Assembly: GCF_037042905.1 (NCBI RefSeq)
Contig: NC_087246.1
Coordinates: 25,854,001 to 25,918,000 of the forward strand
Reading direction: 5' to 3'
DNA length: 64,000 nucleotides
Origin: Lytechinus pictus
Lineage: Eukaryota
Shown here: one piece after another, positions 31,535 through 61,021 of the stretch
Position numbering within the stretch: the first letter of the stretch is position 1
Layout: each line of letters opens with the position of its first letter
Program-made: the position numbers and the translations under genes
Notes under the pieces: generated by a model
What the model was told of the DNA's origin: nothing
Databases searched by the model: none
Seen by the model: the letters and a program-made list of their open reading frames with translations, nothing else

Positions 31535-31726
31535 CTATTTCGGTTCAGATGACGCGGTCTGGATAGAGTTAAGATTCATCTCATCGGAGGTAGCGTAGTC
31601 CTCCTCATCGCCGTACTCGCAGGTAGTGCATCGTCGGAGTCGGCTTGCACTGACGTTGGGATCGAGGATGTAGTCGTACGTGATCGCTCCTAGCAGTCCA
31701 CCAATCATTGGTCCAACCCAGTAAAC
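31535..31726 (-). CDS. Aquaporin (AQP4/AQP1-like) last coding exon: TM6 and C-terminal tail
   Basis: CAG acceptor, then VYWVGPMIGGLLGAITYDYILDP...SSEPK*, the canonical MIP TM6 motif; phase 0. Confidence 0.93.
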   Translation of the reverse strand, partial: VYWVGPMIGGLLGAITYDYILDPNVSASRLRRCTTCEYGDEEDYATSDEMNLNSIQTASSEPK

Positions 31727-33118
31727 CTGATCAACATAAAGATGAGAAACGTATAAGCACATAAAATTGAAGGGGTACTCCGGGCTGAAAAAATATATAT
31801 CTGAATAAATAGAGTAAAATTAAAAATTTCATCAAAATTCTGAAATTCAAAGTTTAGCAATATTTTGTTAAAACAGTTATATTACGCACATCGTCATGAA
31901 TATTCATTGGATGGACTGATGATAAAAGTCACCACTTTTCCTTTTCTTATGTTATTACAGGAAATCATAATTATTTTATATTTTCATACATGTGTGTATG
32001 ATATGTCTCTCTTATAGTAAAATAAGTTGCAGCAATGAATATCTAATGCATTAAAGGATCCGGGCGGAGAATATTAATATCTAAATAAATAAATTAAAAT
32101 TCACAGAGAAAAATGCTGAAAATTTCATCAAAATAGGATAACAAAATAACGATGTTATTGAATGTTAAAGTTTAGCAATATTTTATGAAAACATATATAT
32201 GCACGTCATCATGAATATTCATTAGGTGGGCTGATGATGAATTTTCAATGTCCCAAGCAAGGTTGGTATGCCTCACAATAGAGTTAGTATCAAGGTAGCC
32301 GAGTGTTGCTTTCTAAGATTGGTTTCTATACATATAAAGTATCATCGATTTATTCTGTATCATTTCAACAATTTAATTAGCTTCATCATCCGAATATAAT
32401 TTTGGCCAACACTTTATGAACGGTCATCATGGCCATCGGAAGTAATCGTTATCGATAAATCATCAGTCAAAAAAATGAATGGAGGAATACATTTTCCCCG
32501 ATGATTGACATCATGCCGTATGCTCTCGAACACTTGAACTTGGAGAGTACTTAAGAAGGTCGTTTGTTCTTTTTTTTTCAAATCGAAAACATGCATTCAA
32601 CATCGGGTAAAGGAAACACACCAGTAAAATAGAAAATCGTTCAAATTGGATCGGGAATCAGCAGCATAATTTTAGGGGATAATTAAATGTACATTGTTCT
32701 TTTGGTAGACCTCTCGGTCAATTATTTGAAATTTTCAAATAGCGTATTTTATAGCATCAATTTTGCAGACGCTTTCTGCAATATTCAGAATATCTTGAAA
32801 ATGCCCGTCAAATCACAACGGATAGATTAGAGGTCATTGTCGAAAGTTGGTGTAACGGGACAGCATATCGTCTTCAGATTTGGATCGGAAAAAAAAATTG
32901 CAAAAATGTCGTTTGTCCAGAGTCCAGGACGACACTGCTGTTTTGATTCACTGATTTTCGACAAAGACTGCTTTGTTATGAAGGGGTTTTGACAAAAGAT
33001 TCTCTATATACGTTATAGAAAGCGTCCACGAAGTGATTGCTAAAATGCCCTAATCAGGTTTCATTTAAGCGAAGAGAGGTTTGTGAATTGATGGAAATCG
33101 AATAAAACCAAAACATAC

Positions 33119-33199
33119 CCAGTGCGCAGTCCATACTCCACCGACGACAGCCGATCCAAGACTACGAGCGGGATTCATACTAGCACCAGAATATTGAAT
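33119..33199 (-). CDS. Aquaporin 81-nt exon with the second NPA motif
   Basis: CAG|[27 protein letters not shown]|GTATGT; phase 0-0. Not in the ORF track. Confidence 0.93.
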
Positions 33200-33379
33200 C
33201 TGTAAAAGAAATTAGAAAGATATCATTAAGTTGGTAATATTTTGCAAGTGTTATTCACTTACTTACAAATCTGTGTATAAACTGGTGAAGATGTGCCTGT
33301 GCCTTGCATTATGTATAAAGCTGCCAGTGGCAAATGGTCTGGAATTTCTAGCCGAGTCAGGCTTTCACCCAATAGACAG

Positions 33380-33451
33380 TCATTATCACCAATACTATTC
33401 ACCACCGTCATCATCACCATCATCATAATCAGTATCATCATCATCATCACC

Positions 33452-33483
<32 letters not shown>

Positions 33484-33690
33484 TACAATCATAAGTAGTA
33501 GCATCAGCATCATCACCATCACCATCAACAGTATTACCATCGCCATCACCACCAATACGACTACATCCACCACCATCGCCATCATCATTATCAACATCAC
33601 AATGTCATCATCATCTGCAATCGCGAGCACCATAATCACCATCGCCAGCATAATCATCACCATAGTCAACTCCACAACCACCACCGCCGT
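33380..33690. repeat. Degenerate (CAT/CAC)n microsatellite
   Basis: Direct inspection. Confidence 0.95.
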
Positions 33691-34738
33691 CGTTAAAACA
33701 CCCCTTTAAAGCATAGCTAGAGTAAAACATTTTGTTTGAATGTATTTGCCTATTAAGTTTTAAATGAGAGAAAGAGATGTAAAAGGAGATTCGATTTCAC
33801 ACCCTTTTAATCCTCCCACGATATCCGCGGTCAAGATGTGCATGTACATATTAATCATGGATGCGTTCTTTAGAGCATAAATGTTGTCACGAGAATGTTA
33901 TGATATCAACGAGTGTAAACGCTGCTCCAAAGTCTGATACCATCATTGTGTTATGATAGACGTAAATGGCAATATATGACCATTTACTGCAGCTTTTTAT
34001 AAACCAGTCTATCTTATCTTATTGAGAACAAACAAAATACAAAACAACATTAGAGCACAAGCCGCAAAGCTATTTAAAACAGCGATTTCATGTAAATTTG
34101 ATTGATTACAAAAAAGTCACATTGATCATTGACATCTCAGTGATTTTTCGAGGGGAAAAAAGTTTTAATTGTCACACTTGTAAAAAAAATAGTCAGGATG
34201 AAATAATACTCATCATGTACATTTTTGATCATTTTCCTTTCTGAAACTCGGTTATTATAGTGATATCATTGTCAAACACCATGTCCAAGTAAAAACGACA
34301 TCAAGTGTGTATTGGTTGCATGGGATAAAGTGGCCTATATGATTTAATTATTTCCCGCGATAATTTCAAACTGACAGCCAATTAATCTTTGTGATTGAGA
34401 GATGAAAAATCATCTGTTGCAGTGGCGGATCCAGGCCCCCCCCCCCCCCCTTGAGAGCCATAGTCCAAACTTTTGATGGAAATATGCCGTTCTTACACAA
34501 GTGTGCCCGTTGTAAAGTCACAACATATATTTTTTAATGGGAATATGTCGTTTATACACAAGGGAGAACCTTTTTTTTTTTTGCTTGTCAAATTTTCCTC
34601 GGGAAAATGTGCCCCCCCTCCCTTTGAAAAAATCCTGGATCCGCCCCGGAACTGCTGAATAAAGATATTCTTATTTACATCTTGCAAAATCAAATAGACG
34701 CTTTTATGTCACATCGTAGCACCTTGATGTTAACTTAA

Positions 34739-35394
34739 AGGACAAGTCCACCCCAACTAAAAGTTGATTTTAATAAAAAGAGAAAAATCCAACAAGCATA
34801 ACACTGAAAATTTCATCAAAATCGGATGTAAAATAAGAAAGTTGTGACATTTTAAAGTTTCGCTTAATTTCACATAACAGTTACATGCACATCCTGGTCG
34901 GTATGCAAATGAGGAGACTAATGACGTCATCCACTCACTATTTCTTTTGTATTTTATTATATGAAATATAAAATATTTTGATTTTCCCCTCATTGTCAAG
35001 TGAAACAACGATTAATTCCTCCCTGAAAATGTGGAATTAGCATTGATTAATACTATATGGTTCAGTCAAGTTGGTCCTTATTGTCAAATCTGTAAAAAAT
35101 GAAATATTTGTTTTTACTGGTCCAAAATTATGGAATTCTTTTTCAAAGGATATTATACAATGTAATTCAATACACAATTTCAAAGGAAAACTTAAAAAAT
35201 ATCTTCTGAATTCATATTAGATTATCGTTTTTTCCCAAAGTAATGTAATTCAGAACTTAATATGTAAATGTGTTTATTAATTTCTCTTTGTATATATGTT
35301 TAATCGTTTTATGATTTCTGTATACAGTGTATACTGAATCATTTATTTTTATTATTATTTATTTATTTTTATTTTTATTTGTTTATTTTTTATT

Positions 35395-35434
<40 letters not shown>

Positions 35435-35897
35435 TATTTCTTTATTTTATCTTATTTTTTATTCATAAAATTTACTTATAAAAGGGGGCCTTTACCCTAC
35501 AAGCTCTGCTTTTTAGTTGGTCTCCTTCCCTTTCGATTTCATGGTATTATTGTATTATAAAAAAATGATTTAAATGTTATATTTTGTAAATATGTATATT
35601 GAACTATCATTGTAAATGTAAAAAGATTGAAAGAGAAAATAAATGAATTGAATTGAATTGTATAATTCAAACAATAAAAAACAAAAGAAATAATAGTGAG
35701 TGATGGACATCACCGACCGGCTCATCTGCATGTCACTGAGTTGTGCATATCACTTATTTGTGAAAAATAAGGGAAACTTTAAAATGCCGCATAACTTTCT
35801 TATTCTACATCCTATTTGGATGAAATTTTCTGCGTTCTGCTAGTTTGATTTTTCTCTATTATTTCACATCAACATTTTTCTGGGGTGGACTTGACCT
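34739..35897. mobile_element. Second Kolobok-like copy, interrupted by an AT-rich insertion
   Basis: TTAA|AGGACAAGTCCACCCCA...TGGGGTGGACTTGACCT|TTAA; reverse-complement similarity to 25568-26158. Confidence 0.8.
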
Positions 35898-38800
35898 TTA
35901 AAGCACGTGCATATACAATAGACTTTAAACCGTAATGATAGCTATATTAAACCATATGACCTAATCCCTACATCTGAGAACGTGCTGGATATCATCAACA
36001 AACCATGCAAATTGTCCACAGTGACTTAAAATACTTTAATTCGAAAATATTTTGAAATCGCATCTGATATTTATTTCGTGAGAAATACATCACGAATCTA
36101 CGTGGGAATCACGAGAGTGAATATAACATAGATACATGTATAGTGCAAATGACGGGCATGGAATATAACCGCATAAATTGTCATTCCTTTTTTTTTTTTG
36201 ATCGGTCATCGCGAGATATTGGCAGAGTGCTATAATTGACTATATAAATATTGACTGAGTTGGTCTAATGCATACATGTGATATCCATTTCCCAGGGGTT
36301 AATATTGACAAAGATCAACCGAACAAAAATATTTCACACTTGACCTTTATCAACATAAAAATGATACCAAACATCATTCGTATATGATCAATGCTTTGAT
36401 TGCAGTGATGCTATTCATATACATGTAACAAAGTTATTACCCCATAATTGTAATGACACGTGGATGTTTAGGTGCAAAGAATAGCTTTATATCGTATCGT
36501 TTATCAAAATCGCTATATGTGTGAGACCAGTGAGAAAAACGTGATATTCAATGATACTTTTATAGCACAAAATAATAATACATAACATTTATAAGGCACC
36601 TACTATATATACCATGCAGGCGTTTCTAAGCGCACTGTATTATGTTTATGGTTTATACTCGGGGAAAATGATAAAGAATCATATCAAATCATAGAAATCA
36701 TAGAATTTACCATTTCTTAAGTATATCATTTCAACTCTTTCCACTTTCGCCTTCTCCCAAGAAAAGATGGCATATCGTCGTATCATATTAAAGGGTGTCA
36801 TATTGGCCCGATGTACAAAAGTATCCTCTCTTTAACCTTCTCTCCAACATTGTTCTTCCAATAAATCTGTTTCTCACATTGCAAAGCAAGAGTTAAAACA
36901 GAGAGTAAAAATTGATAATTTTTTATATAAAAAAATCTACAGCGAATGTGTGCATGTGACTATAGGGAAGTTTCACGCCTATAGCGTGCAACCATTTTTC
37001 ACCTCTCAACTCCGAAGCAAGCTTCAGAACCTGACAAACATTCCATATCATCATAGATGACTGTCATAATGAAGGATGCGGATGGATTATTGGTGAGGCA
37101 ACTGGTCTCGATTCATGGCGTACTTCTTCGGATTACTTGGCAAAGAAGACATTCTTACATCCATCATTATTTTCATAAAACCACATCATTAACCAGCTGT
37201 GGTCTCGGATATAATTTTTGTTCTCTGTAATGACGTTTTGAATTCATCAAAATAAAAACGATTTGACAAAATTAAGCTGTTTTGAGGCAGGGGGAGTGGC
37301 GGGAATCACCGCTCCATGAACATGCAAAAATGCGAAAGGAACATTCACTAACAGGTATCATTTTGTAGAGGAAGGGGACTGAAATTCATCAATGCAATAT
37401 ATAGCTCATCGTCTTTTATGAGTTATTTGGTAAAATATTGTCTTTGGACTTAAATAAATAGTTGTATGTCGATTCGATACTAAAAGTTCACCATTTACCA
37501 TTTCATTATCTCCTTACATTTAGTTAAATGACCATAACTTTATAATTGGTCGACTTTGCCTATAACCATTGTTAGCAAACGACTCCTTATAAGTGACATT
37601 ATGAATGACTTATTAAAACACCATAACAAAGACATTCATGAATATTATGGCACAAGAATGCTCTAGTTTTCTGACATGACCTTGGTTCTGAATCGTAAAA
37701 CTAGATGTGTCAAAGACGTAATAGCATCATCTTTGTAGAAGTATGGAAAGTTGATGCGATTTATGTTTTACAGGCAATAATACAATGACACGTATACCAT
37801 AAATCACGATTACATTTATATTTGTTAACGGAATATAGAAGCTTCAATTTTTTTCTGATAACACCACGTGGGGGGAGGAATGTAAAGATTATATTTCAAA
37901 TAATGTAGGAAAGTCCCTCGCCCCTCCTAAAACGATATTAATTCCATTGCTATATCTTCGATCATAATTATGGATTTCGAATCTCACTCTCTATCTCTAC
38001 CATTCATTGAAATAAAGAGTTACAAAGCTTTTATATATTTGTAAGTAATAACAAATCAATTTGCAATTGATTGCTTATGTTCAGCATCAGTCGACAAAGA
38101 TGGAAAGTCACTCAAAAGTGTGTGTTAGAAACACAATATTTTTTATTAACAATAAAATAGATACTGATAACTCATTTACATGCACGATTTCGACATGCTT
38201 GCAAAATCGCGATCTTTTCACTGAATAAGCATGATAAACAAAAAAACTTGAATGAAAAATGAAATTGAACCAAATCGTTACACTATAAATCGAAAATTTT
38301 TGGTTACCTTTATCCACCAAGCGACACTGAAAATACATTCTTATTTTAGAAAAGCATGTAAGCACAACTGCATTGTCACAATACAGGATAGAGGAAAAAA
38401 GTAACCAGAATTTATGACTGTGACTGCGAAAACTAATAAAAGGATATCGAAAAAAGCAACTACAAATTTAGGGAATACACTATAGTTTGGCAAGCATCCC
38501 AATCTTAAAAGGATTTGCATCCCGTTTTGAAGTTTGTTTTCACCGTAGTAATGATAACAAACATAAATCAGTGATGTGAATGAACATCTACTCAATATTC
38601 ATCTTTGCAATTCCTATATTTGGGGCAAGTCCAAATTTGCGCCCCATATACGTATTTCCTAGTATTAAGTGTATATTTCGGGGGTTTTAAAAATAAATCC
38701 CCCAAAAGTAACTGTCACTGTCCTAGATAATTATCAGGTCCTCAAACCTCCTATTTGTGTGGATAATAATGAAATTAAACAATAACGTGTTTTGTTTATG

Positions 38801-39469
38801 TTCTACATCCTGTGAATTTTATATTCACAAACTTTGTCTTTTTTATAATACAAAACAACTTTAAAAGCACGGAATGGACTGGACAGTGCAAGACATAATA
38901 TTTGTTTCTTCAAGCATTACACTTTGGAAATAAAATGTTCCAAGGGCCCAGAAATAAACCATGAGAGGTTGCTAGATATTTTCAAAAGCAAAATTCTTAT
39001 TTTTACAAAGGAAAAAAAAATCGGCGCCTCGGACCCCTTTAAATTCCTTCCGACGGGCATGTATAAAAGGTATGTGTATTCGGAACACACGTGGTCATTT
39101 CCCATTTTAGCATCCTGTATCAGTATCTGCTGGATGAGATGGAGGTATATAAAAAAAAAAAAGGTTGAAGTGACGTAAATAGATAACATAACTTAGACTT
39201 AACCGAGTTCCACTTCCCCGGTTTCGGCTCCAGGTTTTAGTGAAAGTTTAAAGCAGCTGGCTAAATTCAGGTTATCACGAAGAGACAATATAAAAGCTCC
39301 ATATAGACAAAATGATAGTTCCAAAATTTTGCAATTACAACATTGCCACGACTGATCTCAAGATACATGAAGATCTGACAAGATTTGACACGATCATTTC
39401 GATTACTCCACAATTTTAACCACGGTGTCAATCGTAGCGTGAATCGCAACAGTGGGAAGTATATGCAAT

Positions 39470-39710
39470 GCATAAACTCCGGTGTTGATTAAACACCAGT
39501 CCGGAATCTATATATCTATGTCCACACCAGAGAAGTGTTAAACAACACCACTTTGGTTTTGGTCTAACACCAGATATGTGTTTATATAACACCGATTAGT
39601 ATTAAAACAGCATCGGTTTGATTCCAAACTGGTGTTATTTCAATACTTCTCTGGTGTGGACATAATAGATTCCGGGTTGGTGTTAAATCAACACCGGAGT
39701 TTTTGCAGTG
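39470..39710. mobile_element. CACTG-type (EnSpm-like) MITE; similar element at 54609-54846
   Basis: AAACTCCGGTGTTGATT / AATCAACACCGGAGTTTTTGCAGTG termini with internal AACACC motifs. Confidence 0.55.
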
Positions 39711-41999
39711 TGTAAGGGCGACATAAACCGCACCCTTAAAGATATATATGTATAAAGATTCTTGGGATCAACATTTGCACCAAACATTTGCTCCAAACAT
39801 TTACTCCTAATGCACGATTTGAAATTTACAAAATCACTCTCTGTATGTAAACGTGTGTAGATTTTCTTTCTAAGCTAATAGTCCAGGAAAAATAACTGAT
39901 TTTGGGGGTCAACCGCAAACAAATTGCAATAGAATTTTTTTTACCACAATGCATTTCCCTGAAGTCCCCAAAATGACATACTAAAAGTCCAGAAAAATCC
40001 CAGTAGTGGAAAGACGTCTAATTTGCATAAATCCAAAATGGCCGCCAAATTTTCAGAAAATTTGAATTTTCGTACATAGATTTTGACATGAATATGTAAT
40101 TGCCACAAAATTAGTGTCATATGAAAGAGAAATAAATTTCCTACAATTTGGTACTATTTATAGGGGATAGAAAGATAATTTGGCTGAGATTTTTTAGTAG
40201 AAAACTGCATTTTTGTCATTTTTTCTCAAAAATTGAAAATTTTGGAAATACATGATTTTACATAAATCTGAGAAAAATTAAGCAATTACCTTGAAATGTT
40301 TCAGAAAACTTTACTGATATACTATTATCATGTGGATGCAATTCTAAATTGGTGTCATTCTTTTTAACAAATTTATAAGGTATCAAAGTTGAATGTTCAA
40401 ATTTTACAAATGTCGCTTTTTGTATGCATTTTTGTAGACTAATATGTATAACGTGTACAGTACAGTAGTGAAAGATTGTATGCATTTATCTGCGCTTTTT
40501 AACCACTTAGTTAAGATTAGGCTTTTTTTATATCTACATAAAAAGGTTGGTACATTGGCGCCTACCCCTCTCAGGGGGCTGTCAAAGTCACGCCTGCTGG
40601 CTATATCATGCTGTACAGTGTGTGTCAAAATAAACGCAACCACATTTTATTCCAAATTTGTGAAAAATTTGTTAGCTTTAAAGTCCAGAAAAAATTAATG
40701 ATTTAGGGGGTCAACCTCAAACAAATTGCACAATAATTTTTGTACTGCAATGCATTTCCTTGAGGTCCCCAAAGTTTCATACTAAAAGTGTTTTAAAAAT
40801 CCATGTAGTGGAAAGTCGTCTTATTTGCATAAATCCAAAATGGCGGCCATCGCAAGAATTTTCAGTAATGTTTACTTATAGTAGTACAAACACTTGTCTT
40901 ATCATAGCACTTTGAAAAGTTATGATTTCACCAGTGTTATATCTTACCATAGGCTTCGTCTTAAAATTAGGATGCAAGTCAGATTTGGCCTCTGCTGACC
41001 TCTAGAGGTCAATGACCTCAAGGTCAACGACCTCAAAATATCAGAAAATTAATGTTTGTCATCATTAGCTCATGATAAATATAATAATAATGCACACATA
41101 TTTATTATTCAATATTGACTTTCAAGGTAACCTGATATTCTAGAAAGATTTTTGTGTATTATAAATGTTGACCTTTGACCCTGGAGCAATGGAAAAGGTC
41201 AATAACCTTAACATATTACAATATTGATACTTAGCATCAGTGGTTTATGATAAACAGGCCTCTCGTGAAAAAAATACAATACAATTTATTTCAGCACAAT
41301 GCATTTCCATGAAGTCTCCAAAATGGCATACTAAGAGTCCAGAAAAATCCATGTAGTGGAAAGACATCTAGTTTTTGCATAAATCCAAAATGGTGGCCAT
41401 CGTGAGAATTTTTCATTTTTACAAATAATGGTAAAAACACTGGTCTGATCATACCACTTAAAAAATAATGATAAAAGCATTTAACTTTCACCAGTGTTTA
41501 TCTTACCATAGGCTTCATTTTAAAATTCAAATGCAATTCAGATTTGACCTTTCCTGACCTCTTGAGGACAATGACCTTAAGGCCAATGACTTAAAAATAT
41601 TGATGTTTTGCATCCAGAGTTCTTGATTAGCATCATGTTATCATTGTGTTTGAAATTTGAGGATCTCTAAAGAAATTTGACCTTAAATGTAAAAATATTG
41701 GTACTCGGCATCACTGGTTGATATGATAATGTTTTGAGGTAATTGACCTTTCACTTTCCTCAGTAGTCAAATGTTGAGATCTGCAATCTTTACCCAAATG
41801 GTCTGTTTAAAATAACAAAACCATAGATGTATAGTTGTAAGTTTGTAACGCAAGGGGCACGTTTTATAAAGAGTAACTTTGCCATTATGGCAACTACCAT
41901 GGCATTAGGGTTCAGCAGCCAATCAAAATCAAGGTTACCATGGTAGTTGTCATAATGGCAACGTTACAACATTTGTAACTCTTTATGAAACGGGTCCCA

Positions 42000-43200: not shown

Positions 43201-43229
43201 TCTGAAGTATGGAAGCTTAAGATGTTCAT

Positions 43230-43705
43230 ATAATCATCTCGTCAGGTCTACATCTCTTAAGGAAAAGAGATAAGATGTCGAAATCTCGGATCTCGTCATG
43301 TCTACATCCTGTGGGAGAGATGATCAGGTGACAAGATATTGGATCTCGTCATGTCAACATCTTTTAGAAGAGATGATCAGATCTGTGATCTCGTCATGTC
43401 TACATCTTTTAGAAGAGATGATCAGATGAAAAGATCTGGATCTCGTCATGTCTACATCCTATAAGAGAGAAATGATCAATGACAAGATCTGGGATCTCGT
43501 CATGTCTACAACTCTTAGGGAAAAGGATAAGATGACAATATCTTAAATATGATCATCTCTCCCACAGGAAGTAAAAAAAGGCGAGATCCAAAATCTTGCC
43601 ATCTGATCATCTCTCACACAGCATGTAGACATGACGAAATCTAAGATATTGCCATCTTATCTTTTTCCGTATGCAGACATGACGAGAAATCGGAGATGAT
43701 CAAAT
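43230..43705. repeat. About 50-bp tandem repeat that switches orientation midway
   Basis: GATCTCGTCATGTCTACATC about 6 times forward, then GTAGACATGACGA in reverse. Confidence 0.8.
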
Positions 43706-43867: not shown

Positions 43868-44049
43868 ACCGGTGTGTTGGCTCAGTTGGTAGAGCGTCCG
43901 TCTCACAACCGGGAGGTCGGGGGTTCAAACCCCGGCCGCGTCAGACCAAAAGACGTTAAAAGATGGGAGTTGCTGCTGCCCTGTTTGGCGTTCAACGATT
44001 AAAGGGATAGAGCCTCGTCGATCTGGCGCTGCACAGCGGCTGCCGGGCC
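43868..44049 (+). mobile_element. tRNA-derived SINE, split by an insertion (3' part resumes at about 46308-46345)
   Basis: A box TGGCTCAGTTGG and B box GGTTCAAACC followed by a non-tRNA body; no acceptor stem. Confidence 0.75.
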
Positions 44050-44262: not shown

Positions 44263-44316
<54 letters not shown>

Positions 44317-49530: not shown

Positions 49531-51109
49531 ATATATATAGTTTTCTCCCTATCTTTCTTTTCTTCACGAGAAGAAGAAGCGATGAAGACGTAAAAGACGA
49601 AGAAGAACAAGAAAATGAGGATTTGGAGAGAACGAGGGAAGGGGGTGGAAGGAGGAGGATGCCGTTGATGGAAAAATATAAAAACTTATTTAAAACACAT
49701 TCAGCCCATGTAACGTATATCTTCTTATTCTTGAAACTATAAGTGGCGGGTTATCACAAGCGATGGATCGGTACAAAACCCACTTGAGAAATGCCAGATA
49801 AAAGCGGGTCATCCACTTAAATCTATAAACTGATTACTCTAGTGCTATACCTTCGCCCCTCTTTATGGGTTTTCCGACAAATAACGGTAGGGGTGTTTCT
49901 AGAACGAAGACATGACCTTACTTTGATGTGTACAAGCACACCATGAAAGCTTGTTTAGCGTGTTAAGGGGGTTGTACGGTCTATCAACCAATAAATAGGA
50001 TTATGTGTAAATCCCAGAGAATCTGCTAATTGACGGCGGAGGTTTCAATTCATAATGCCTTTGACATTGAAACGTATACGTGATAGAACCTTTGAATTAG
50101 GAAGGAATATTGTATGCGAGTGGCGACACGCAACATACAAACTCCGGTATAGGCACGATGTGCGATGGTGTGCTATAAATTATCGTTTGGTAAAATCAAC
50201 CCACGATATGGGAATAACAATAGGGATAAGGATGTGAAGAATATGCTGGTAATATTACAGTCAGAACTACCATGTAAAAGTATTTTCGATTTACATGTGG
50301 TTACAAGAAGCGATTGAAAAGGAATGAGTAAAACATATCCCTGATCGCACAAAACAACAATTCTATTATCATTCGACAAACTGAATATAGATGAAATGAA
50401 TATTTGAGTTTCTTTTTGATACTGAAATTATAACTCTCTCGTCCATTCACAAAGAATGCTTGGCCTACTTGCTATCCTGCATTCGATTGGCGCATACTTT
50501 TCAAACTCTTAGCCAATGAGCGGAAAGAACGCATTCGTACACTGTATCAATGATTCAAGTATGTACTATAATACCATGAAAATTTTTTAGAAAGCTCGAG
50601 ATCCAAACTTTGTAACTTCGTGGTAAACAGGTAAAATTGTGACCACTCTATAAAAAGGAGAGAAATTAAAACGGATAGCTGTTCTGTTGATTTTATGAAA
50701 ATGGTTGAAATTAAGATCAGTAGAGATGACCATGGACGTGTTGTAAATGAGTTTGAACCGGTAAGAACAGGGATGTATCATCTCTTTGGTTTAACCGTGA
50801 CTCAGAAAATCAAACGCAGACATTTAATATATTCGCTTCTGATTGTTTGAAAATCAAACGAACTTCATTAATTTTGATAACATTTCTTTCAACGGAGGGG
50901 GCCCCGGAACATGCAGGAAATGTGATTTTATAAACAGTGGTTAATAAAAACGAACTGATGATTGTTAAAATAGATACTTTTGGTTGATTCGTCGCCCTTT
51001 GGAATTAAAGAGAGGGCGGGGAATGAAGGTACATGAAAAGTGGGGAGGTACCGAGGAAGGAAGAGGGAGGGAGGGGAGGGGAGGAGGGAGGGAGGGGAGG
51101 GGAGGATGA

Positions 51110-51372
51110 NNNNNNNNNNNNNNNNNNNNNNNNNNNNNNNNNNNNNNNNNNNNNNNNNNNNNNNNNNNNNNNNNNNNNNNNNNNNNNNNNNNNNNNNNNN
51201 NNNNNNNNNNNNNNNNNNNNNNNNNNNNNNNNNNNNNNNNNNNNNNNNNNNNNNNNNNNNNNNNNNNNNNNNNNNNNNNNNNNNNNNNNNNNNNNNNNNN
51301 NNNNNNNNNNNNNNNNNNNNNNNNNNNNNNNNNNNNNNNNNNNNNNNNNNNNNNNNNNNNNNNNNNNNNNNN
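51110..51372. other. Assembly gap (263 N)
   Basis: Run of N adjacent to a GGAG-rich tract. Confidence 1.
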
Positions 51373-53376
51373 TCAGCACTCGTAGTGTGGTCCCTACAAG
51401 CACTGTAAGTGCTAAATTGGCACTTCATTTTTTACAGTCTATCAGATCGACAACGCTCAACTCTCTCTCCTCTTATATAAGAGGAGAGAGAGTTGAGCGT
51501 TGTCGATCTGATAGACAACACACATCGCATGATTTTGTGACGGAATAAAAAAAATAGCGATCACAACCATTATTGAGATGGAAAACTGTAAAAATTTGTT
51601 TTGAATGAGAGCGTTTTCAAAAGCATGCATCTAAAATGTCCATAATGATGGACGCATGAATGTATTCTTTTGTGAATCATAATTGCAATTCAATGTCAAC
51701 CGATTTGTAAATTTATGTTTCGAGCATGGACGGCGTTCTTGGGGTGTCACTTTTGAATGTCGAGTTTTGTAAAGCAGCCTATGGGAGTGTTCTCCCCCCC
51801 CCCCCCCCGAATGACCAACAATCTTACGAAAACGCTACGCATGATTTAAAGCGTTATAGGGGCAAGTAACGAACGCATTTATACAAAAAATAATATCTTT
51901 TCTTAATGGAAGAAAATAAATAACTTACAAGGTTGGTCTGTCATCCATTTCTGACATAAACATATGAGTTGCCATAACGTATTGTTTAACAACAAATAGC
52001 AAACGATTGAATGTTTCAACATTTTGTCTGAGGAGGGTGGAAGAATGACTACATTTAGATCTGTACACATTCCAAGGTTTTCACTAGCCCTTTTTCTAGT
52101 GCTGCTAAGTTTAATTGGCTGGAGTCATGAGGCATTATTGGTCTATAATAACTGTCTTAATTATGATTATTCTATAGATCACTTGATACATTGGGTTATT
52201 TAACATTTAATTTGGAGAAAATGCCGGTGGCCGGCAGTCCATGGGCCTTTTGTGGCACTGTGTCGGCCGGTCAGGGGCCGTGTCGGTTTTTCAATGCCGG
52301 TCTCTGCCGGCCTAAGTGGCACTACTGGTACGTACCAAAATGATTGAACGCCAACTTGGGCTATTTATGTACCAAGATCAAACAAGATACTGGGTTTTGT
52401 TAACAGATGAACGGAATGAACAGAACTTTCTGATTGCCTTATTTCGCAAGGGTTGATTAAAGGTGTTTGATTGAATCACCATTGTATGGCGCCGTCTACA
52501 TGTGGTTTTAATTGTTTAACGGTGACGAGTATTTGGGAGCTACTTGTAAAATCTAATGGTTAGATCTCCGATAAAAGTCACAACTCAGCTCAAGTTGTCG
52601 ACCTCCAATCATGATCATTTTAGTGCTGAAGATGAACTTAAATAAAAGATATTCTGAAAATTTGAACTCACGATTATAACACTGATGTAGCTGTCCCATT
52701 CGTTTTGTTACTTGAAATTAACGCAGCATTAATTAGGTAGAAAGCAGCTCAGCGCAGGGAATGGTTTCCAAGGGAAAAGCCACCAAAACAAGGATTGACA
52801 TGCTTAAAATATGAAATGATATAGAGAAAACTTTGCCACCTACCCCCTTCCAATCCACCACCACCAAATAATATAATTGAATAATAAAGCAATATAACAA
52901 ATGTCATCCTTGTAATATAGAATATTTACATATTGGAAGTAAAAAAACAAATCACCAACGTCATCATCACCAACACCATCATCACTAACATTACCACCAC
53001 CATCATCATCATCAGTGGCGTGGTGAATCAAGAATTTGGAGTAGAACACGAATGTTGTACAGGGTTCTAAATAGCCGCGAGGTAGCAAAGCGAGGGGGCA
53101 AAACATTTGAAAATGAAGTCTATTTAAAAGAATATCTAGAAAATAGTTTCATATTGTACTCTTTTCCTCTTCATTCGCTTTTTTATTTTTTTTTCTTTCT
53201 TTCCCCCCTTTTTATAGATCATTGACCTTTTGGAGAAAGGATTAGGATTAAAGTACCACCAGCCCATATTATGTTTACGCCGGTGATCATCATCATCTTC
53301 TTCTTCGCAATCGTACTAGACATAATGATGGTCATAAGCAACATGGGCAATGAATATTAAAATGAATGATACTGAC

Positions 53377-53922
53377 CGCTGCAAGATGAGCAACGAGAAC
53401 AGCGATACCAATGGCGAGTGGACCGGATCCGCCAGGGCTAGCTCGTTTACTATCAACCGTTGAGAAGATGACTAGCACCAACTGAAATGTCAGGCAAACT
53501 TCCATGAGGAATGCCTGCCAGTCTTGAACCCCAGAACCCGGTGTCGTCGGCCCTACGTTATTGGAGACACCGGAAGGTGTGATGGCATAGACCATACCGG
53601 CTGCCGCCATGGCGCCAAGGCACTGAGCAATGGAGTACGCGAAACATCTGAGAGGGGTGATTCTATGAAGGAGCCAGAAGGCAACGGAGACCGCCGGGTT
53701 GAGATGTCCACCGCTGATGTGAGCGGTAGCGTGGACGAAGGTCGCCAGGGCCAAGCCGAAAGCGAGTGAGATCTGAACCTGACTTGGAATGACGGGAGGA
53801 GCCCAGCTGGTAGTCGATGAGATACCGATAAAGATGAAGAAAAACATGCCCACCATTTCGGCAATCACTGCTTGCCAAAACTTCAATGACTTCAGCTCGC
53901 TGGCCATCGATTCATCTGCCAT
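53377..53922 (-). CDS. Aquaporin large 5' coding exon A (TM1-TM5, first NPA)
   Basis: MADESMASELKSLKFWQAVIAE...HISGGHLNPAVS...IGIAVLVAHLAA, then a GTCAGT donor at 53376, phase 0. Confidence 0.92.
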
Positions 53923-54179
53923 GCTGATCCAAGTTACTCGTTCAACTTCAAACTATCACAACCAAGAAAATGTATAAGATCAAGACTGCAAAGGAATCGC
54001 ATCAACATCAAGTGAAACTCAGAATTTGGGTTACAACTATTCCTTCAATGTTATTATAAAATTCAGAATCGAAGATGATCTCACAAGGAAAGGGTACGTA
54101 TAAAATATGAAGAGGATTCATAAGACGATATTATTTTTAAGCATGGGCTCGTGATCCAAACTGAAACGATGACGAGAAT

Positions 54180-54380
54180 GTGGTCTATCTGAGATGAACA
54201 CCGCCTCTATATCGAGACGCGGTATTCGACGTGCAGTACGTAAACACGGTAGGTTGATGTGAATGAGAGAATGGACCATGCCCACTGAAACTAGCCAATC
54301 AACGCAAGACATGAAGGTGACGTGAAATACTTCTCCACCAATCACATACGGCCCGTCCAAAGTTTCGGCAAACGTTACGT
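54180..54380 (-). promoter_or_regulatory. Candidate promoter upstream of aquaporin exon A
   Basis: CpG-enriched patch with two CCAAT boxes (about 54295 and 54338) flanking TGACGTG (about 54318). Confidence 0.4.
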
Positions 54381-57300
54381 CGAAAGATCACAATAGGTGA
54401 GGAGACCAAATTAAAGTTTGTATTTATTCATATTGTCAATACTAGGATTCTGTTCGGTTTGATATTTATATTTATAAAGTGACAACTTGTCAATCTGATC
54501 AATCCCGCTCAGGGAGCCAAAGTCCAACATGAAAACAATATTATGCACAATGCTTGCCCGTCCCAAAACTCCAGTGAAAAGAATTTGACGTTTTTCCATC
54601 TCTGTGTACACTGTAAAAACTGTGGTGTTAAAACTGACACCGGTGGGTGTTGATAGAGGACCACACCCTCTGGTGTTACAATTACACCCTAGAGATTGAA
54701 TATAACACCAAAGAGTGTACATGTAACAACCAAAGGTGTTGCAATTACACCTATAGGGGCTAAACTAACACTGTCAATTTAACACCGGTGTAAAATCACT
54801 GGTGTGGTCATCATGTACACCGGTTAACACCGCAGTTTTTGCTGTGTAGTAACACGGCGTTCGGTCCAGTTATGACATATAATATTCATGATATTAGGAG
54901 AACTACACCTGATCATGGCGTGATCATAACTATGAGTTAGTCAATTAATCTCGCTTGCCAATTCGATAGCTACCATCAACACTACAATACAACATTAATA
55001 TCATCTGAAGATAACCTCTACTTCTACGTACGAGAGAAGCGTATGGAGTCAATCAATCAATATGAATATTTTATCATTTACCAGTTCATTATTAGGACGG
55101 ATCCACGTATCTTCAGCCTTCTCAGTTGAAATACTATATATACAACACTGGAGAGAAGGAAATTATATTTCATACAGTTTAACCTTGGGTTAATGGTGTA
55201 CATCTATATAGTATGTGCATTCAGTTAATACTACACGTCGTCGCGACGAAAATTAAATCAATGTACTGATAGTAAAAAGATAAAAGATTTACAGATAATA
55301 ATAAAATATGTTAATGAGAAGGATAATGGTTTTCATGGTAATGATGATGATAAATGTTTTAATGATATAAAAAAGGAAAACAGATTATGATGCTTGATTA
55401 CCTCCTTCATTATGAGAGAGAGCAATTCAATTTTGATCATTTTATTTTGTCTCCTATTAATCCAAGCGCGAAATAAGATGTAAGCTTTGACTATACGACA
55501 TGAACACTTTATTGGAATAAAAAACAACAGAATACATGTACAATTCTTTATTAAACCAAGAAGATTCTATGACTGGAGTTCCAACAGGCAACAAATTTAT
55601 TCAAGCAGCTGTTCATTTCTAAAGAAGCACAAAAGAAAGAACGGCAATAAGGACCTTTTTGATGTCCGCCTTCGAAGCCGCCAGTTTCAACGAAGAAATC
55701 CGAGGGGTGAAATTTTACGAATATTCATTTGTATAAATTTTTCATGTTTCATATTAATAAACAAACTGAAATTTGAATGCATGACAAATCATCAATAACC
55801 AAGCACTATTACGACGAGATATTTGCCCATATTATATCAATTAACCTTTAATTAGTGTAAAAAAAAAAGGATTTGACCTTTACTGAAACCAGATTTTAAC
55901 ACTTTTCCGATCGTTTGCGGCGAATGAAAATTTCAAATGTGGTCGGTGGAATATTGTTATTCATTACTGTATATGCCAGATGAGTGCCCGCACATGCCCA
56001 GTCGAGCAAATTTGAGTCATATTTCAAAACATATTGCATAGTTTATTTTCGCATGCCTCCGAATTATGTATACTACACATAATTATAACCAGACCAAGAT
56101 GCGGCGAAAAAGTAAGTATCATCACAAAAGCATATTTCCCTTTATGTATGACCTATAGCTGCGGAGTCATGCGGGAATAGTTTTGTCTACACAATTGCAA
56201 GAGATGTTGAGCAAAGTGCATGCCTGACATACTTTCTGCTGGCGGTTTTTAACCTTGTTCAAAGAGATTTTATTTGCTGTTACTCCATCTCATTTGAAAC
56301 CTCCTTGATTAAACATGTTAAAGGAAGATGGCTAGAACTCATACAGCGAAAGAAAACGAAATATTTTTTTAAATATTTATAATGAATATAGATAATGGAC
56401 ATCACGGACTGATGCAATTAGCTTTTGAGGGGAAACTGTCACATCAGAGTTTTGGATTAGCGGGAAGATTATTCAAACTAAATGACAAAGATAGCTTGCT
56501 GTTAAGTTTTAAGAATAACAAGTTCTTATGATCAGAGTTGAAAGAAATATGTTATAGACTATGCGGGAGACTATGTTAGGTGAATATATTTAAACGCGAT
56601 GGGAAAAGGTCATCTGAAGCCTTTAAAGTCATATTATTATTATCATTAAAGATGAAAGCATCGTCTAGATGCTAGAGATTTTTCAACCCATATAAACGAC
56701 TAAAGTAATACCCTGATTGACATATGACTGTAGGGATTCATTTATTCCTCATGCTGAGTTGATGTACATGTACCATGTACAGACGGTTCCATAATCACCA
56801 TAGTAACAGATAGCAAAATATAAAAAAAAATTAATACTCGATCAGTTCATTAAAACGCAGTAAATCTGTCATTTTTTAAATATCGAAATGCAGGGGCCGC
56901 TGGGAAAACAGTTTATCATCATTATCATCATTGTTATGATACACTGAGACAAAATGTCTAGAGGTTTTCGAGTACACGCTCTCAATATGATAACAATAAT
57001 AATAATATTGCATTTATAGAGCATTTAATATTAAGATCTCTAAGCGCTTTACATTAATTAGAAGACTTATTGAATTACGATACATGCTCATGGTCAACAA
57101 TACGGAAATTAGGTAACTCGTAAGTAAAATTTAGAATGATGAAATATCTACGTTATAATGTTACTTCCATGATAATGTCATCGTCATTATCGAAACAATG
57201 GCGATCGGAATTTTCATGATCATCATAACCACGTAGTTTTCATGGTGTGTTATCATTCCCATTGCAACTTGAAATATACAAATTTAAATTAATTTGATTG

Positions 57301-57429
57301 TCATCATGTTTTCAGCAGGATGATTTCGGCAGCGCGCAGTTCGACTCCATCACAACCACCATCACCTCTAACATTGCAAAGTTCATTCAACATCACTCAT
57401 TTTCTTAGTATCATGTTTCTCTGTATATA

Positions 57430-58237
57430 CAGTTGAGGCCAAAAGTTTAAATATACCCATGGAATTCAGTGAAATTTGTCTATTTGCTAAACATCGTAAA
57501 ATTCACTATATCTTCAGAAATATAAAAACTACCATGACGATTGGTATCAAATGAAAGAGCGTATTAAGCTTTTTCACTTGATTGGGGTGCCGTTGGGATT
57601 TAAGTATATTTCAGGTGAAATTTTCTTTGAAGAAAAAAAAAGGAATATTCGTGCCAAATGTATTCTATTGTTTGTTATTATATTTTCAAAAATCGTTTCA
57701 AAGTTTCATAGAAATATATAAATGTCAAATATATGATTTATATTACATTTTCTATCATGATAGTCACCACTGAACAAAAAAGTGTAATCTGGTGGGTGTT
57801 TCATAAAGCTGTTCGTAAGATACGAATGACTTTACGCACGACTGGTGATCCTTTCTTGTGCTATGTGATATCCCTATGTAATTGAGTTATGACCTAAGAA
57901 CATGTTCCATTCGTGCGTAAAGTCGTTCGTAACTTTACGAACAGCTTTATGAAACACCCACCTGAAATGTTTGTGTTGAGAAGTAACTAGCATAAATATG
58001 AAATGTTTTTGTCCAGTTATTTTTATTTCTCTACAATATGAAGATTTTAGGGGGAAAATGACACATAAATATTTTCAGCACCTGATGACAAAGCAATGTG
58101 ATGAAGGGGCATGACATATTTTGTTTGATATCAAATAACACAAATATTTTATAAGATGCAGTAAATTTTGTGATGTTTGGCAAGTGTCAACTTTTCTTTT
58201 AATTTCCTGGGTGTATGTAAACTTCTGGCCTCAACTG
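57430..58237. mobile_element. Tc1-like non-autonomous element carrying Harbinger-like MITE insertions
   Basis: TA|CAGTTGAGGCCAAAAGTTTA / TAAACTTCTGGCCTCAACTG termini. One MITE lies inside (57792-57961) and another in the terminal CTG (58238-58408). Confidence 0.75.
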
Positions 58238-58670
58238 GGGGCCGTTTCATAAAGCTGTTCGTATTAAGTTAAGAGCGACTTTAAGAGCGACTGGTGATCC
58301 TTTCTTACGCGCTAAACCACAGCCAATGAATCTACCATTTACAAGAAAGGATCACCAGTCGTTCTTAAAGTCACTGTTAACTTACGAACAACTTTATGAA
58401 ACGACCCCCAGTATAATTGATGATCCGAATAGTAGTTTCGTCCCAGAGCTAACGAAAAATTGAAAATAATTACGAATCAAGGATTGTACTGCAATTTTGA
58501 TTATCAAATTTTCGATATAGACTTCTTTGCTTGTTTATTTGTTTTTGTCATGACGAACATGTGCCGACAATACATTCTGAAATCCTGGATCCACCCTAGC
58601 TCCTTTGAATGGCTATAACATATAAATAATTCCAATAAAAAGGATAGAACATCGTGAATAATATACTTAC

Positions 58671-59201
58671 AGCACACAAATGAGCAACCAGAACAGCGAT
58701 TCCGATGGCGAGTGGACCCGATCCTCCAGAACTTGGACGACGCTTATCGATGGTAGCAAAGATCACAAGGACCAACTGATAGGTGATGACGAGTTCCATG
58801 AGGAGTGCTTGCCATTCCGTGACATCAGTCCCGGGTGTAGTAGCTCCGAGGGCATTGTTGATATCGGCAGGTGTGATGGCCCTGACCATACCAGCAGCAG
58901 CGATTGCACCAATCATCTGAGCTAAGGAGTAGAAGAGGAACCTTAGTGGGGTGATCCGATGAAGCATCAAGAACGCCAAGGACACTGCAGGATTGAGGTG
59001 TCCACCGCTGATGTGGGCGGTGACGTGGATCGATGTAGCCAGTCCAAGACCAAAGGCAAGGGAGATCTGGACCATGCTAGGGATGTAAGGGGCGTTCCAG
59101 CCTGATATGGAGGCCAAGGAGATGAAGATGAAGAAGAACATACCAACGAACTCGGCGGCAACGGCCCGCCAGAAGTCGATGGACTTTACTTCGTTAGCCA
59201 T
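58671..59201 (-). CDS. Aquaporin large 5' coding exon B (TM1-TM5, first NPA), paralogue of exon A
   Basis: MANEVKSIDFWRAVAAE...HISGGHLNPAVS...IGIAVLVAHLCA, then a GTAAGT donor at 58670, phase 0. A strong acceptor (T-tract plus CAG) places the exon start at 59239. Confidence 0.92.
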
Positions 59202-61021
59202 CACGATAGTATGACGTGAAGGGGGCTTTCTTTGAAGATCTGGAAATGTAAAAAAAAAAAACACACACAAGATGATTCATAATTTATTAACCGATCACAT
59301 CCTTGGAAATTCCCTTCGAATGGTATATTTTAAAGAGATTTCGAAAAGTATTTCTCCCTTGGTATTTCATGAAAAAGGATTGAATATCCCCCAAAAAAAA
59401 AAAAATATATATATATATGTATTACCAATTGTATTCTATGATGTATCTACAATCAAATAAAATATGCAAGCGAAGCGAGCGGAGGAAATAATGTCAAACT
59501 ACACCTTATTTAAAGGACAATATCATTGCAGGGTTCAGTGAGAGAAATAGAATAGAATAGAATACAAAAAGAAAAATGCTAATGAGCCAATCGACGAATA
59601 AGCACGGTTGTCGTATCACGAACCAACATTGTCCAATTTTTCTGCGCAACCTGATTTTGACATTAACATTTCAAATAAAGAGATGATTTAATTGTAATGA
59701 AATATACTTATTTTGCCTTTGAAGAAAAAAGATGTGGGATTCCCAGTTTCCTTTTTTTCTGGGACGCACTGGATATGTTTCTACGTTTTTGCAGATTTGT
59801 TGAGCTGAATATGCTCATTCCATCTAAACCAAGTATTGTTCCATCATGCATAATGAACAAACAAATTATTAATTTCTGACTTGAAATTTCCAGCCATGTA
59901 CTTGTAGAGGAAATAGTGGTTAAATAGGCCAACAGTGATTGCAAAATGCATATCAAACTTACCAACTGTATGCTTCACACACTAACGCTTTACAAAGTTA
60001 ACAATAACTTGTCTGATGTCCAACTTATTTTTTTCCTGCCTCGGAACGTCTTTCCCTCACAACACCGCTGTAAGAACTGAACTCTTTTAGCACCTCCTTT
60101 CTAAATAATCCGCTTGACACAACACCGCTTACTCATTAGAACACCGTGGCTATTAAAGGTATTTGACACCATTCGTTGTTTTGATTGAATCAGGTAATTG
60201 TTTGATATTACTCTTCCGCGAAGTTCTCCTTTATTGATATATTTAGAATTTCTGGTAGTTGTGAGTCTTAACAAATTTTCAGACAATGAACGAGACAAAC
60301 TCAGTAAGCCATTTCTTCACCAATTTTGAAGACCTATATAGCCCCCAATCCTGGATTAATGAATCAGCACATAGAACTTGATGCCAACTTAACAAGTTGG
60401 TCGACAATGAACCTGATTAGCTCATTCATTTATTCGGATCGGTGCGGATCTTAACGAATTAATCCTCCGTAAACTTGATATGATCTTAACAAGTTGGCAG
60501 ACAATGGACATGACCAACTCATTCAGTGATAATAATAGAGGGTGTTCCTTTATACCGAGAATAAACTGATAAGTCATAAAAATGGGATTCTGTAGCCTAG
60601 AGATGTCTAACAACAAACAATTCTATTCCACAAGGATCGTCAAAACTAACAGAGGAGGGGTGGTACAATGTTTATATTTCAAAAATAAATATAATTTATT
60701 CCTTTTATAGAATCTATAGAGGCTATATTTCCTTGTACACAAATCTTTAAAATAAATAAAAATCTCGTCAAGATTTGATGAACTTTCCGATGTACATCCC
60801 GATCAATTTGGATCGTATTCAATTTGATTGGTCTGTTTTTGTTGTTGTTGCTGGGTTTTTTGGGGGGTGGGGGGTAAACGCTTGAAATCTTCAAAATTTT
60901 AAATGAATCCTTAGTTATCAATGCAAACGATTTAATTGATACATCAAACAGACCTCTGTGAGTATGCAAACAACGTTCTCAGAAATATTTAACCAACCTA
61001 CCGGGTTGGTTACATAAGCTT

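Follow-up and report, generated by a model that had tools for sequence, protein, structure and literature searches.

The DNA analysed here (the window, 64,000 nucleotides of Lytechinus pictus) carries four exons of an aquaporin gene, all on the minus strand and arranged in the order B, A, E3, E4. Variable exon B (58671..59239) is by its splice signals an internal exon, with a 3' splice-site AG at 59241-59240, a coding part that runs from the ATG at 59201 to 58671 (177 aa, MANEV...VAHLCA) and a phase-0 GTAAGT donor; it encodes TM1, TM2, the NPA1 half-helix, TM3, TM4 and most of TM5. The same span of the channel is encoded by variable exon A, whose coding part (53377..53922) yields 182 aa (MADES...VAHLAA) and closes with a phase-0 GTCAGT donor. 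Constant exon E3 (33119..33199; acceptor ...TTTTACAG, donor GTATGT) supplies the last TM5 residues, loop E, NPA2 (SMNPARS) and half-helix HE, its peptide ending ...AHW, and is the sole NPA2 exon within the window. The coding part of constant exon E4 (31535..31726; acceptor ...GATCAG) encodes VYWVGP...EPK, comprising TM6, an acidic C-terminal tail and the stop codon, and the exon extends as 3' UTR, with a match to a transcript's 3' UTR up to about 30386.

The division of the channel among these exons is mirrored in the 222 positions of the Pfam MIP profile (PF00230), of which A and B each cover 1-177 (E about 1e-47), E3 covers 179-205 and E4 covers 206-222. The two variable exons had been described from the letters as intact, gap-free paralogues about two-thirds identical that end at the same codon with phase-0 GT donors; this holds, with 68.9% protein identity over 177 aligned codons and no internal gaps. 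With tblastn E-values of 1e-117 and 1e-78, chance matching is of no concern. A permissive tblastn search (word 2, E up to 50) with five echinoderm aquaporins revealed no MIP exon beyond these four in the readable sequence of the window, and in particular none in the 4.7 kb between B and A or beside the N gap, in agreement with the earlier claim of a single NPA2/TM6 exon pair and an empty interval between the variable exons. The same search found no extra variable exon in the 4.8 kb of the window upstream of B, and long ORFs elsewhere in the window had no Pfam match.

A comparison with other sea urchins provides a framework for judging whether this arrangement is genuine. The sequence-only reading had set the locus against vertebrate aquaporins, a frame of reference that does not suit an echinoderm such as the sea urchin L. 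pictus. The check that it proposed, for the same architecture in related species, came out in its favour, as the B-A-E3-E4 layout with a single 3' pair is also present in gap-free orthologous loci of L. variegatus, Strongylocentrotus purpuratus and Diadema antillarum, where permissive tblastn revealed no private 3' exons for A or B. The donors are kept across species (GTAAGT/GTGAGT after B, GTCAGT after A), and the NPA1 motif and the pore F and H of the variable exons are also conserved. The suggestion that more variable exons could lie past the right edge fared less well, as a search of the 10-18 kb preceding B in S. purpuratus and in Diadema found none. In a phylogenetic tree the B clade (support 95/98) and the A clade (87/84) each contain Lytechinus, Strongylocentrotus and Diadema, and both sit within an echinoid clade (94/94) that leaves holothurians, asteroids and crinoids outside; by this tree, the A/B split is older than the Diadema-camarodont divergence.

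The orthologous loci also bear on an assembly gap of 263 N (51110..51372), whose true size is uncertain and which lies between A and E3. The gap could be taken to conceal NPA2/TM6 exons belonging to A or B, or such exons could have been misassembled away, in which case the locus would consist of two ordinary tandem genes. The gap lies inside the A-to-E3 intron and outside all exons, so no reading frame spans it, and because it is downstream of A, B could use exons hidden there only by crossing A. A G/A-rich simple repeat borders the gap on the left and a 40+40 nt perfect palindrome on the right; judged by the coordinates of the flank matches, both bordering sequences map colinearly to L. variegatus, identically oriented and separated by about 86 nt. 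The three other species show a single 3' pair in gap-free sequence, and the A-type and B-type isoforms of L. variegatus have identical C-terminal 90 residues, against 69% identity of the variable exons. Private exons hidden in the gap, which the earlier reading had named as its own possible undoing, thus find no support in these comparisons, and we consider two ordinary tandem genes scarcely credible and close to refuted.

The product that joins B to the constant exons is predicted to be a complete aquaporin. The RefSeq protein XP_063970371.1 (P0121, L. pictus isoform X3) equals the window's B+E3+E4 exactly, with residues 1-177 from exon B, and an AlphaFold model of this combination (pLDDT 84, pTM 0.83) shows six TM helices and two half-helices (helices at 8-31, 43-65, 71-79, 85-109, 129-151, 162-181, 187-197 and 205-225), with NPA motifs at residues 70-72 and 186-188. 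Foldseek aligns the model to human AQP4 (3gd8) with a TM-score of 0.95, normalised to the target, and an rmsd of 1.5 A. The protein has the features by which the MIP/aquaporin superfamily is recognised, namely the whole profile, six TM helices and two NPA half-helices; its nearest solved sequence is AQP4 (E = 7e-64), and the top PDB sequence matches are AQP4, AQP2 and AQP1. Residues F50, H174, A183 and R189 of the RefSeq protein align with the F, H, A and R of rat AQP4 that we take to be its constriction residues, and exon A carries the same pore F and H. Constriction type and closest relatives would place the channel among the classical water-selective (AQP4-like) aquaporins.

Rates of evolution point to constraint on both modules. 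Between L. pictus and L. variegatus (dS about 0.1), A has an omega of 0.066, B of 0.057 and the constant part of 0.12, while the introns flanking the exons are just 57-72% identical; between L. pictus and S. purpuratus the corresponding values are 0.076, 0.12 and 0.11. By these comparisons A and B are both under strong purifying selection, with dN/dS of 0.06-0.12 for each, equal to that of the shared part, as had been argued from their open frames. Differences between A and B affect about 30% of TM1-TM5 residues and concentrate in extracellular loops A and C and in TM3, with the fewest in loop B and TM5. When all copies are compared, just 4 of 177 positions hold fixed A/B differences (V/A 60, L/I 93, D/G 126, A/S 149), which gives no clear sign of module-specific function.

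A two-isoform architecture is already present in NCBI's automatic annotation. The single L. variegatus gene has B-type isoforms X1, X2 and X4 and an A-type isoform X3 with consecutive accession numbers, and two called genes in that species (L010) share their end coordinate; in L. pictus, isoforms X1 and X2 carry extra 5' exons, which lie outside the window. No annotated or observed product contains both A and B. Several models are truncated: RefSeq ends A early in L. pictus (the 196-aa P0004), and in S. purpuratus and Diadema it is B that is cut short, by a short non-MIP terminal exon 2.2 kb after B in S. purpuratus X1-X3 and by a 188-aa read-through in Diadema. These "half aquaporins" of the annotation pipelines are explained by an architecture with two fronts.

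The truncated B models could alternatively be read at face value, with B left over from a tandem duplicate that was either partial or a since-decayed copy of the whole gene. B would be a separate gene whose transcripts end soon after B and yield at most a five-helix fragment; the Lytechinus models joining B to E3/E4 would then be artefacts of homology-guided chaining. The S. purpuratus isoforms, which splice B to a nearby terminal exon and so do without NPA2 and TM6, and the 188-aa Diadema product are what this explanation expects. Finn et al. 2014 (PMC4245216) likewise count two neighbouring genes, aqp4l2 and aqp4l3. A search of 5.8 billion clustered proteins found no transcript-derived protein that joins B to E3/E4, a combination present only in RefSeq models from the two Lytechinus species. 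Logan contigs of the B type (L007-L009) were considered as proof of splicing and set aside; they are colinear with the genome across both splice sites, being genomic or unspliced, and are therefore uninformative on B splicing. Against a separate gene stand the open, gap-free frame of B and its omega of 0.06-0.12 in four species, a value like that of A and the constant part, together with conservation of the NPA1 motif, the pore F and H and the phase-0 donor. A truncating exon downstream of B that is kept across species was also sought and rejected: neither L. pictus nor Diadema contains a counterpart of the S. purpuratus terminal exon, which is thus not what selection preserves. We know of no function for a five-helix MIP fragment without hemipore 2, and count this against a decayed or separate B, which we regard as unlikely. 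The preferred reading, in which B is a front of the same gene as A, predicts that B is spliced to E3 in vivo, as the RefSeq models have it.

Transcript evidence is direct for exon A. The Strongylocentrotus contig L006 (2171 nt, ending in an A-run) splices A to E3 to E4 plus 3' UTR and begins with a 294 nt 5' UTR that is colinear with the genome upstream of A. This spliced, polyadenylated transcript establishes A as a true first exon with its own transcription start, and by analogy exon A of L. pictus probably continues upstream as about 260-300 nt of 5' UTR. Just beyond lies a putative exon A promoter region (54231..54353, minus strand); in the interval from B to A, no other non-coding block shows conservation between L. 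pictus and S. purpuratus. Two CCAAT boxes in inverted orientation (GATTGG, near 54343-54338 and near 54300-54295) lie within this region, and Diadema retains the first of them. The conservation of the region and the 5' end of L006 suggest that it acts as the promoter of exon A. Exon B is organised differently. B is preceded, about 40 nt before its ATG, by a conserved 3' splice site, and A has no conserved counterpart, so that B reads as an internal exon fed by upstream 5' exons. The end of one such non-coding exon appears at 62662..62687 (minus strand), where ATGGAACATCGG...GACA is followed by a GTAAGT donor; this segment is a short uORF in L. pictus, and L. variegatus isoform X2 treats it as coding sequence. 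Of the splices to E3 foreseen by the sequence-only reading, that from A is seen in L006 and that from B has the support of RefSeq models and selection, with no transcript found. Of its two separate promoters, the one for A is upheld by the transcription start in L006, and in place of one at B there are a conserved 3' splice site and 5' exons.

These data also speak to a further alternative, in which A and B are classical mutually exclusive internal exons spliced from one common upstream promoter. The two exons are homologous, adjacent and of the same end phase, B is internal with upstream 5' exons, and in L. pictus the sequence cctttgcag, about 65 nt before A's ATG, could serve as an acceptor. 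This acceptor is, however, missing in S. purpuratus and Diadema, the 5' UTR of the A-type mRNA is colinear with the genome throughout its 294 nt, and conserved CCAAT boxes lie just upstream of that mRNA's 5' end. A common promoter with splice-chosen exons consequently strikes us as decidedly improbable.

Together, these observations support a model in which a single constant part (NPA2, TM6 and tail) completes either of two alternative 5' modules, each made up of TM1-5 and NPA1. The locus is a real, ancient, two-member variable/constant aquaporin gene, and the variable-constant proposal made from the letters is sustained by the three gap-free loci, the RefSeq B+E3+E4 model, the L. variegatus isoforms, the A-E3-E4 transcript and dN/dS. 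In the mechanism that we propose, a large 5' coding exon would have been duplicated in tandem in an early echinoid, with the two small 3' coding exons staying single. Transcription from the promoter directly upstream of A would give A-E3-E4; transcription from promoters more than 3 kb upstream of B would give 5' exon(s)-B-E3-E4, with A skipped because it has no conserved 3' splice site. Promoter choice would thereby select the module, and the products would be two six-helix channels with the same constriction (F, H, A, R), NPA pair, loop E, TM6 and C-tail, which may differ in expression site or surface properties rather than selectivity. Taken as a whole, one AQP4-like gene with two fronts, promoter-linked choice and two complete channels is the best explanation of the locus, and we hold it with good confidence.

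Such an arrangement would mean that a compact single-domain channel tolerates the exon-level exchange of five of its six helices while helix six and the second pore loop stay constant, and that this exchange has persisted under selection for a very long time. The A and B isoforms are natural chimeras for structure-function work, and, if the reading of a modular channel is true, they offer a chimera series with which to trace gating, trafficking and assembly to one or the other half of the fold. It is likely that echinoids have, since before the Diadema-camarodont split, used a modular channel with two promoter-specific five-helix modules on the same loop E-TM6-tail, whose products could mix in tetramers, and that this is, as far as we have found, the first aquaporin to exchange most of its TM core by alternative exons. 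The count of echinoid aqp4-like genes probably needs correction as well. Finn et al. 2014 (PMC4245216) described Aqp4L2 and Aqp4L3 of echinoderms as a "tandem gene couplet", treated as two tandemly duplicated genes with no mention of shared exons, and placed Aqp4L3 beside Aqp4L2 on the same scaffold, listing it for sea urchins and not for the bat star. XP_799266, the A-type protein of S. purpuratus (P0141), is their Aqp4L2; the position and species range of Aqp4L3, which the supplements of that study give by accession number rather than by sequence, match the position and age of exon B. Aqp4L3 would accordingly be the B type, and the couplet probably a single gene that has two fronts.

Tandem exon duplication followed by the use of alternative promoters and first exons is a familiar phenomenon, and the mechanism itself is not new. 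The nearest parallel is with the UGT1A and clustered protocadherin loci, which share with this one tandem homologous 5' coding exons upstream of one 3' exon set, a variable part that makes up most of the functional domain with the constant part as remainder, and, in exon A, a variable exon with its own (putative) promoter and a 5' splice site only. Tandem variable exons with common constant exons are found in all four species (B-E3-E4 from RefSeq models only). The earlier likening to these loci was right on the two variable exons and their shared constant pair, but overreached for B: every variable exon of such a locus is a first exon with its own promoter, as A is, whereas B, the upstream exon, carries a conserved acceptor and is preceded by 5' exons. 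The locus differs further in having just two variable exons and in placing the join inside a single compact fold, at the end of TM5, rather than between domains. Mutually exclusive exons arising by tandem exon duplication, such as sodium-channel exon 5a/5b and ATE1 7a/7b (PMC9013439, PMC9741552), resemble it in their homologous copies, same 3' phase, ancient duplication and purifying selection on both copies; each transcript of the aquaporin gene would likewise carry one copy or the other, as the annotated and observed products suggest. Such exons are both internal and chosen by splicing; exon A behaves as a first exon, the aquaporin exon, at 177-182 codons, is very large, making up two thirds of the protein with the start codon included, and promoter use, not competition between splice sites or RNA structures, apparently determines the choice. 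Within the aquaporin family, our search of the literature on sea-urchin aquaporin isoforms and on mutually exclusive or alternative first exons in aquaporins found no description of this architecture. Aquaporin genes that yield multiple proteins by alternative use of 5' or 3' exons are nevertheless known, as in AQP4 M1/M23, the N-terminal variants of salmon-louse Glp and the C-terminal splice variants of barnacle Aqp1/Aqp2 and Anopheles AgAQP1 (PMC5513457). Those variants are described there, and generally known, as altering only the cytoplasmic N- or C-terminus, whereas here five TM helices, three loops and the first NPA half-helix are swapped.

The aquaporin gene on the minus strand of the window is built from two tandem large exons, each carrying TM1-5 and NPA1, and a single 3' pair. 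Exon A (53922-53377, 182 residues) and exon B (59201-58671, 177 residues) both translate from Met to ...VAHLxA, the NPA2 exon E3 lies at 33199-33119, and the TM6 exon E4 (31726-31535) encodes VYWVGP..., the tail and the stop, in exact agreement with what the sequence-only reading had described for these four stretches. On the 222-position Pfam MIP profile A and B each occupy positions 1-177, E3 179-205 and E4 206-222, so that the pieces abut and no exon is missing. The splice signals are good, with phase-0 donors GTAAGT (B) and GTCAGT (A), acceptor TTTTACAG and donor GTATGT for E3, and acceptor GATCAG for E4. The common end codon and phase-0 GT donors claimed for A and B are thus present, and the estimate of gap-free, roughly two-thirds identity becomes 68.9% over 177 codons with no internal gaps. 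Permissive tblastn of the window with five echinoderm aquaporins as queries returned no MIP pieces beyond A, B, E3 and E4, which upholds the claim of only one NPA2/TM6 exon pair here. B+E3+E4 is identical at every residue to the Lytechinus pictus RefSeq protein XP_063970371.1 (P0121, 'aquaporin-1-like isoform X3', 267 aa), so the vertebrate framing of the earlier reading was wrong. The gene belongs to the AQP4-like classical aquaporins of echinoderms, and the nearest solved sequence is AQP4 (E = 7e-64).

The Ns at 51110-51372 sit within the A-to-E3 intron, and no reading frame therefore spans them. The left flank (51059-51106) is a G/A-rich simple repeat with a 21-nt unit and the right flank (51437-51516) a perfect 40+40-nt palindrome with no spacer; either could account for the assembly break. 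Permissive tblastn of the window found no MIP-like peptide adjoining the gap on either side, and in the L. variegatus locus the matches to the two flanks are colinear, in the same orientation and ~86 nt apart. The possibility that A or B has private NPA2/TM6 exons hidden in this gap was weighed against the orthologous loci of Strongylocentrotus purpuratus (L003+L001), Diadema antillarum (L004+L002) and L. variegatus (L010), whose fetched ranges are free of N runs. All three carry B, A, one NPA2 exon and one TM6 exon in that order on a single strand, with no extra MIP exon in the fetched ranges, which removes this alternative and shows the same architecture in the relatives. The B-to-A distance ranges from 3.8 kb (L. 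variegatus) and 4.7 kb (L. pictus) to 11 kb (Diadema) and 16.9 kb (S. purpuratus), and the donors are retained across species as GTAAGTAT or GTGAGTAT for B and GTCAGTAT or GTCAGTAC for A.

The A-to-E3 splice predicted by the earlier reading is directly visible in a Logan transcript contig, L006 (SRR31798688; 2171 nt, with an A-run at its end), which aligns to the S. purpuratus genome as exon A with a colinear 294-nt 5' UTR ahead of it, followed by E3 and by E4 with 3' UTR. Because this 5' UTR is colinear in the genome with exon A, A is a true first exon. Between B and A, conservation of non-coding sequence from S. purpuratus to L. pictus is confined to one block, 54353-54231, which lies directly upstream of the equivalent of the L006 5' end and contains two inverted CCAAT boxes; even Diadema retains one of them. 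Comparison of L. pictus, S. purpuratus and Diadema revealed no conserved 3' splice site upstream of A.

Exon B is entered differently. L. pictus and S. purpuratus share a conserved acceptor AG ~40 nt ahead of the exon B ATG, an AG is present further upstream in Diadema, and in both Lytechinus species RefSeq isoforms X1 and X2 reach the B acceptor from upstream exons, one at ~62687-62662 (minus strand) and the others outside the window. This 5' exon is read as coding in L. variegatus X2 (L010 575-608; MEHRCAVLVYD...). The L. pictus counterpart (62662-62687) is shorter by 8 nt and its reading frame meets a TGA, so that the N-terminal extension is not conserved between congeners; in L. pictus it is probably no more than a uORF in the 5' UTR.

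Three RefSeq models of L. pictus and three of L. variegatus contain the B-E3 junction, and the L. variegatus B-type X1, X2 and X4 and A-type X3 belong to one gene, as judged from their consecutive accessions, their last 90 residues, which are identical, and called genes sharing an end coordinate. No transcript-derived protein joining B to the constant part was found in a large protein collection; the Logan B-type 'proteins' were set aside as splice evidence, their source contigs being colinear with the genome and uninformative on splicing. RefSeq handling of the locus is inconsistent across species: L. pictus A is a 196-aa read-through, Diadema B is a 188-aa read-through, and the S. purpuratus B models finish on a short terminal exon of non-MIP sequence, 2.2 kb further downstream. 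That exon (L003 ~20919-20999, with equal coordinates in the merged locus; HHFLNMFSFKSDLSPSIFTDLIMFRV, then stop) has a good acceptor and is used by S. purpuratus X1-X3 to give a truncated five-helix product. Such a product might have been the reason for the conservation of B, a possibility we reject since neither L. pictus nor Diadema has a counterpart of this exon. We know of no function for a five-helix MIP fragment, and B retains NPA1, the pore F and H and the phase-0 donor in every species compared; on these grounds B-E3-E4 is quite probably a real product. On the most economical reading, transcripts from upstream promoters would run 5' exon(s)-B-E3-E4 and pass over A, which has no acceptor, and an internal promoter would yield A-E3-E4.

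A maximum-likelihood tree of the exon-1-equivalent region unites the echinoid sequences in one clade (support 94/94), within which the B sequences (95/98) and the A sequences (87/84) form separate clades, each containing Lytechinus, Strongylocentrotus and Diadema; holothurian, asteroid and crinoid genes lie outside the echinoid clade. This composition indicates that the A/B duplication is echinoid-specific and predates the Diadema-camarodont split, which is of the order of 200 million years old or more. A third echinoid exon-1-type sequence, P0008 (from a 939-nt Logan contig), shares 64% identity with B, lies in neither clade, and could represent a pre-duplication lineage or a further copy. 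Between L. pictus and L. variegatus, exon A differs by 17 nucleotide and 3 amino-acid changes (dN/dS 0.066) and exon B by 13 and 2 (0.057), the constant part has a dN/dS of 0.12, and identity over the first 300 nt of the flanking introns is only 57-72%. Between L. pictus and S. purpuratus (dS ~0.9) dN/dS is 0.076 in exon A, 0.12 in exon B and 0.11 in the constant part. With 0.057-0.12 for A and B against 0.11-0.12 for the constant part over the two species pairs, both exons are coding and are under selection as strong as that on the common part, in line with the earlier claim of selection on both.

The AlphaFold model of B+E3+E4 (pLDDT 84, pTM 0.83) contains all six helices and the two half-helices and matches human AQP4 in superposition (target-normalised TM-score 0.95). 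The join between variable and constant parts falls four residues upstream of the end of TM5, and the constriction residues F50, H174, A183 and R189 are common to both isoforms. A and B diverge chiefly in loop A (~50%), loop C (~50%) and TM3, and little in loop B or TM5; a fixed difference that separates every A copy from every B copy occurs at just four positions. The distinction between the isoforms is likely to lie in the site or timing of production, perhaps in surface or assembly properties, rather than in selectivity. To our knowledge, no known aquaporin isoform alters more than the cytoplasmic ends.

Within the A-to-E3 intron, a tRNA-Val(CAC)-like element (43871-43943, plus strand; called by ARAGORN, with only 36.7 bits for Rfam tRNA) adjoins a 53-bp tandem repeat (43236-43543) and is for that reason probably a tRNA-derived repeat or pseudogene. 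Imperfect (ATC/TCA)n trinucleotide arrays at 33399-33663 and 27749-28017, one only ~200 nt upstream of the E3 acceptor, produce spurious long ORFs on both strands. Downstream of the gene lie long tandem arrays (13621-14443, 15271-16356 and 450-1320) with units of 277 bp x 3 (95% identity), 103 bp x 7.6 and ~158/320 bp, a region in which no ORF has a Pfam match.

Tandem exon duplication followed by alternative or mutually exclusive use is a well-documented route to isoforms (PMC9013439, PMC9741552), and reported aquaporin isoforms vary at their cytoplasmic ends only (PMC5513457). Finn et al. 2014 (PMC4245216) named the A-type protein XP_799266 Aqp4L2 and its neighbour, listed for sea urchins only, Aqp4L3, with the TSA entries JI430437 (L. 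variegatus), JT111244 (S. purpuratus) and GAPB01026719 (Evechinus) given for the latter. They describe the two as a couplet of tandemly duplicated genes on Scaffold664 and make no mention of exon sharing; we infer that Aqp4L3 is the B form. No published description of the shared 3' half was found in the literature, and the architecture is already embodied in RefSeq gene models. The observation is confirmed, and its interpretation as a variable-constant locus is supported with corrections. UGT1A and the protocadherins, to which the sequence-only reading had likened the locus, are the classic variable/constant loci; this one works alike with two members only, but one of their defining features is lacking here, since B is not a promoter-proximal first exon.
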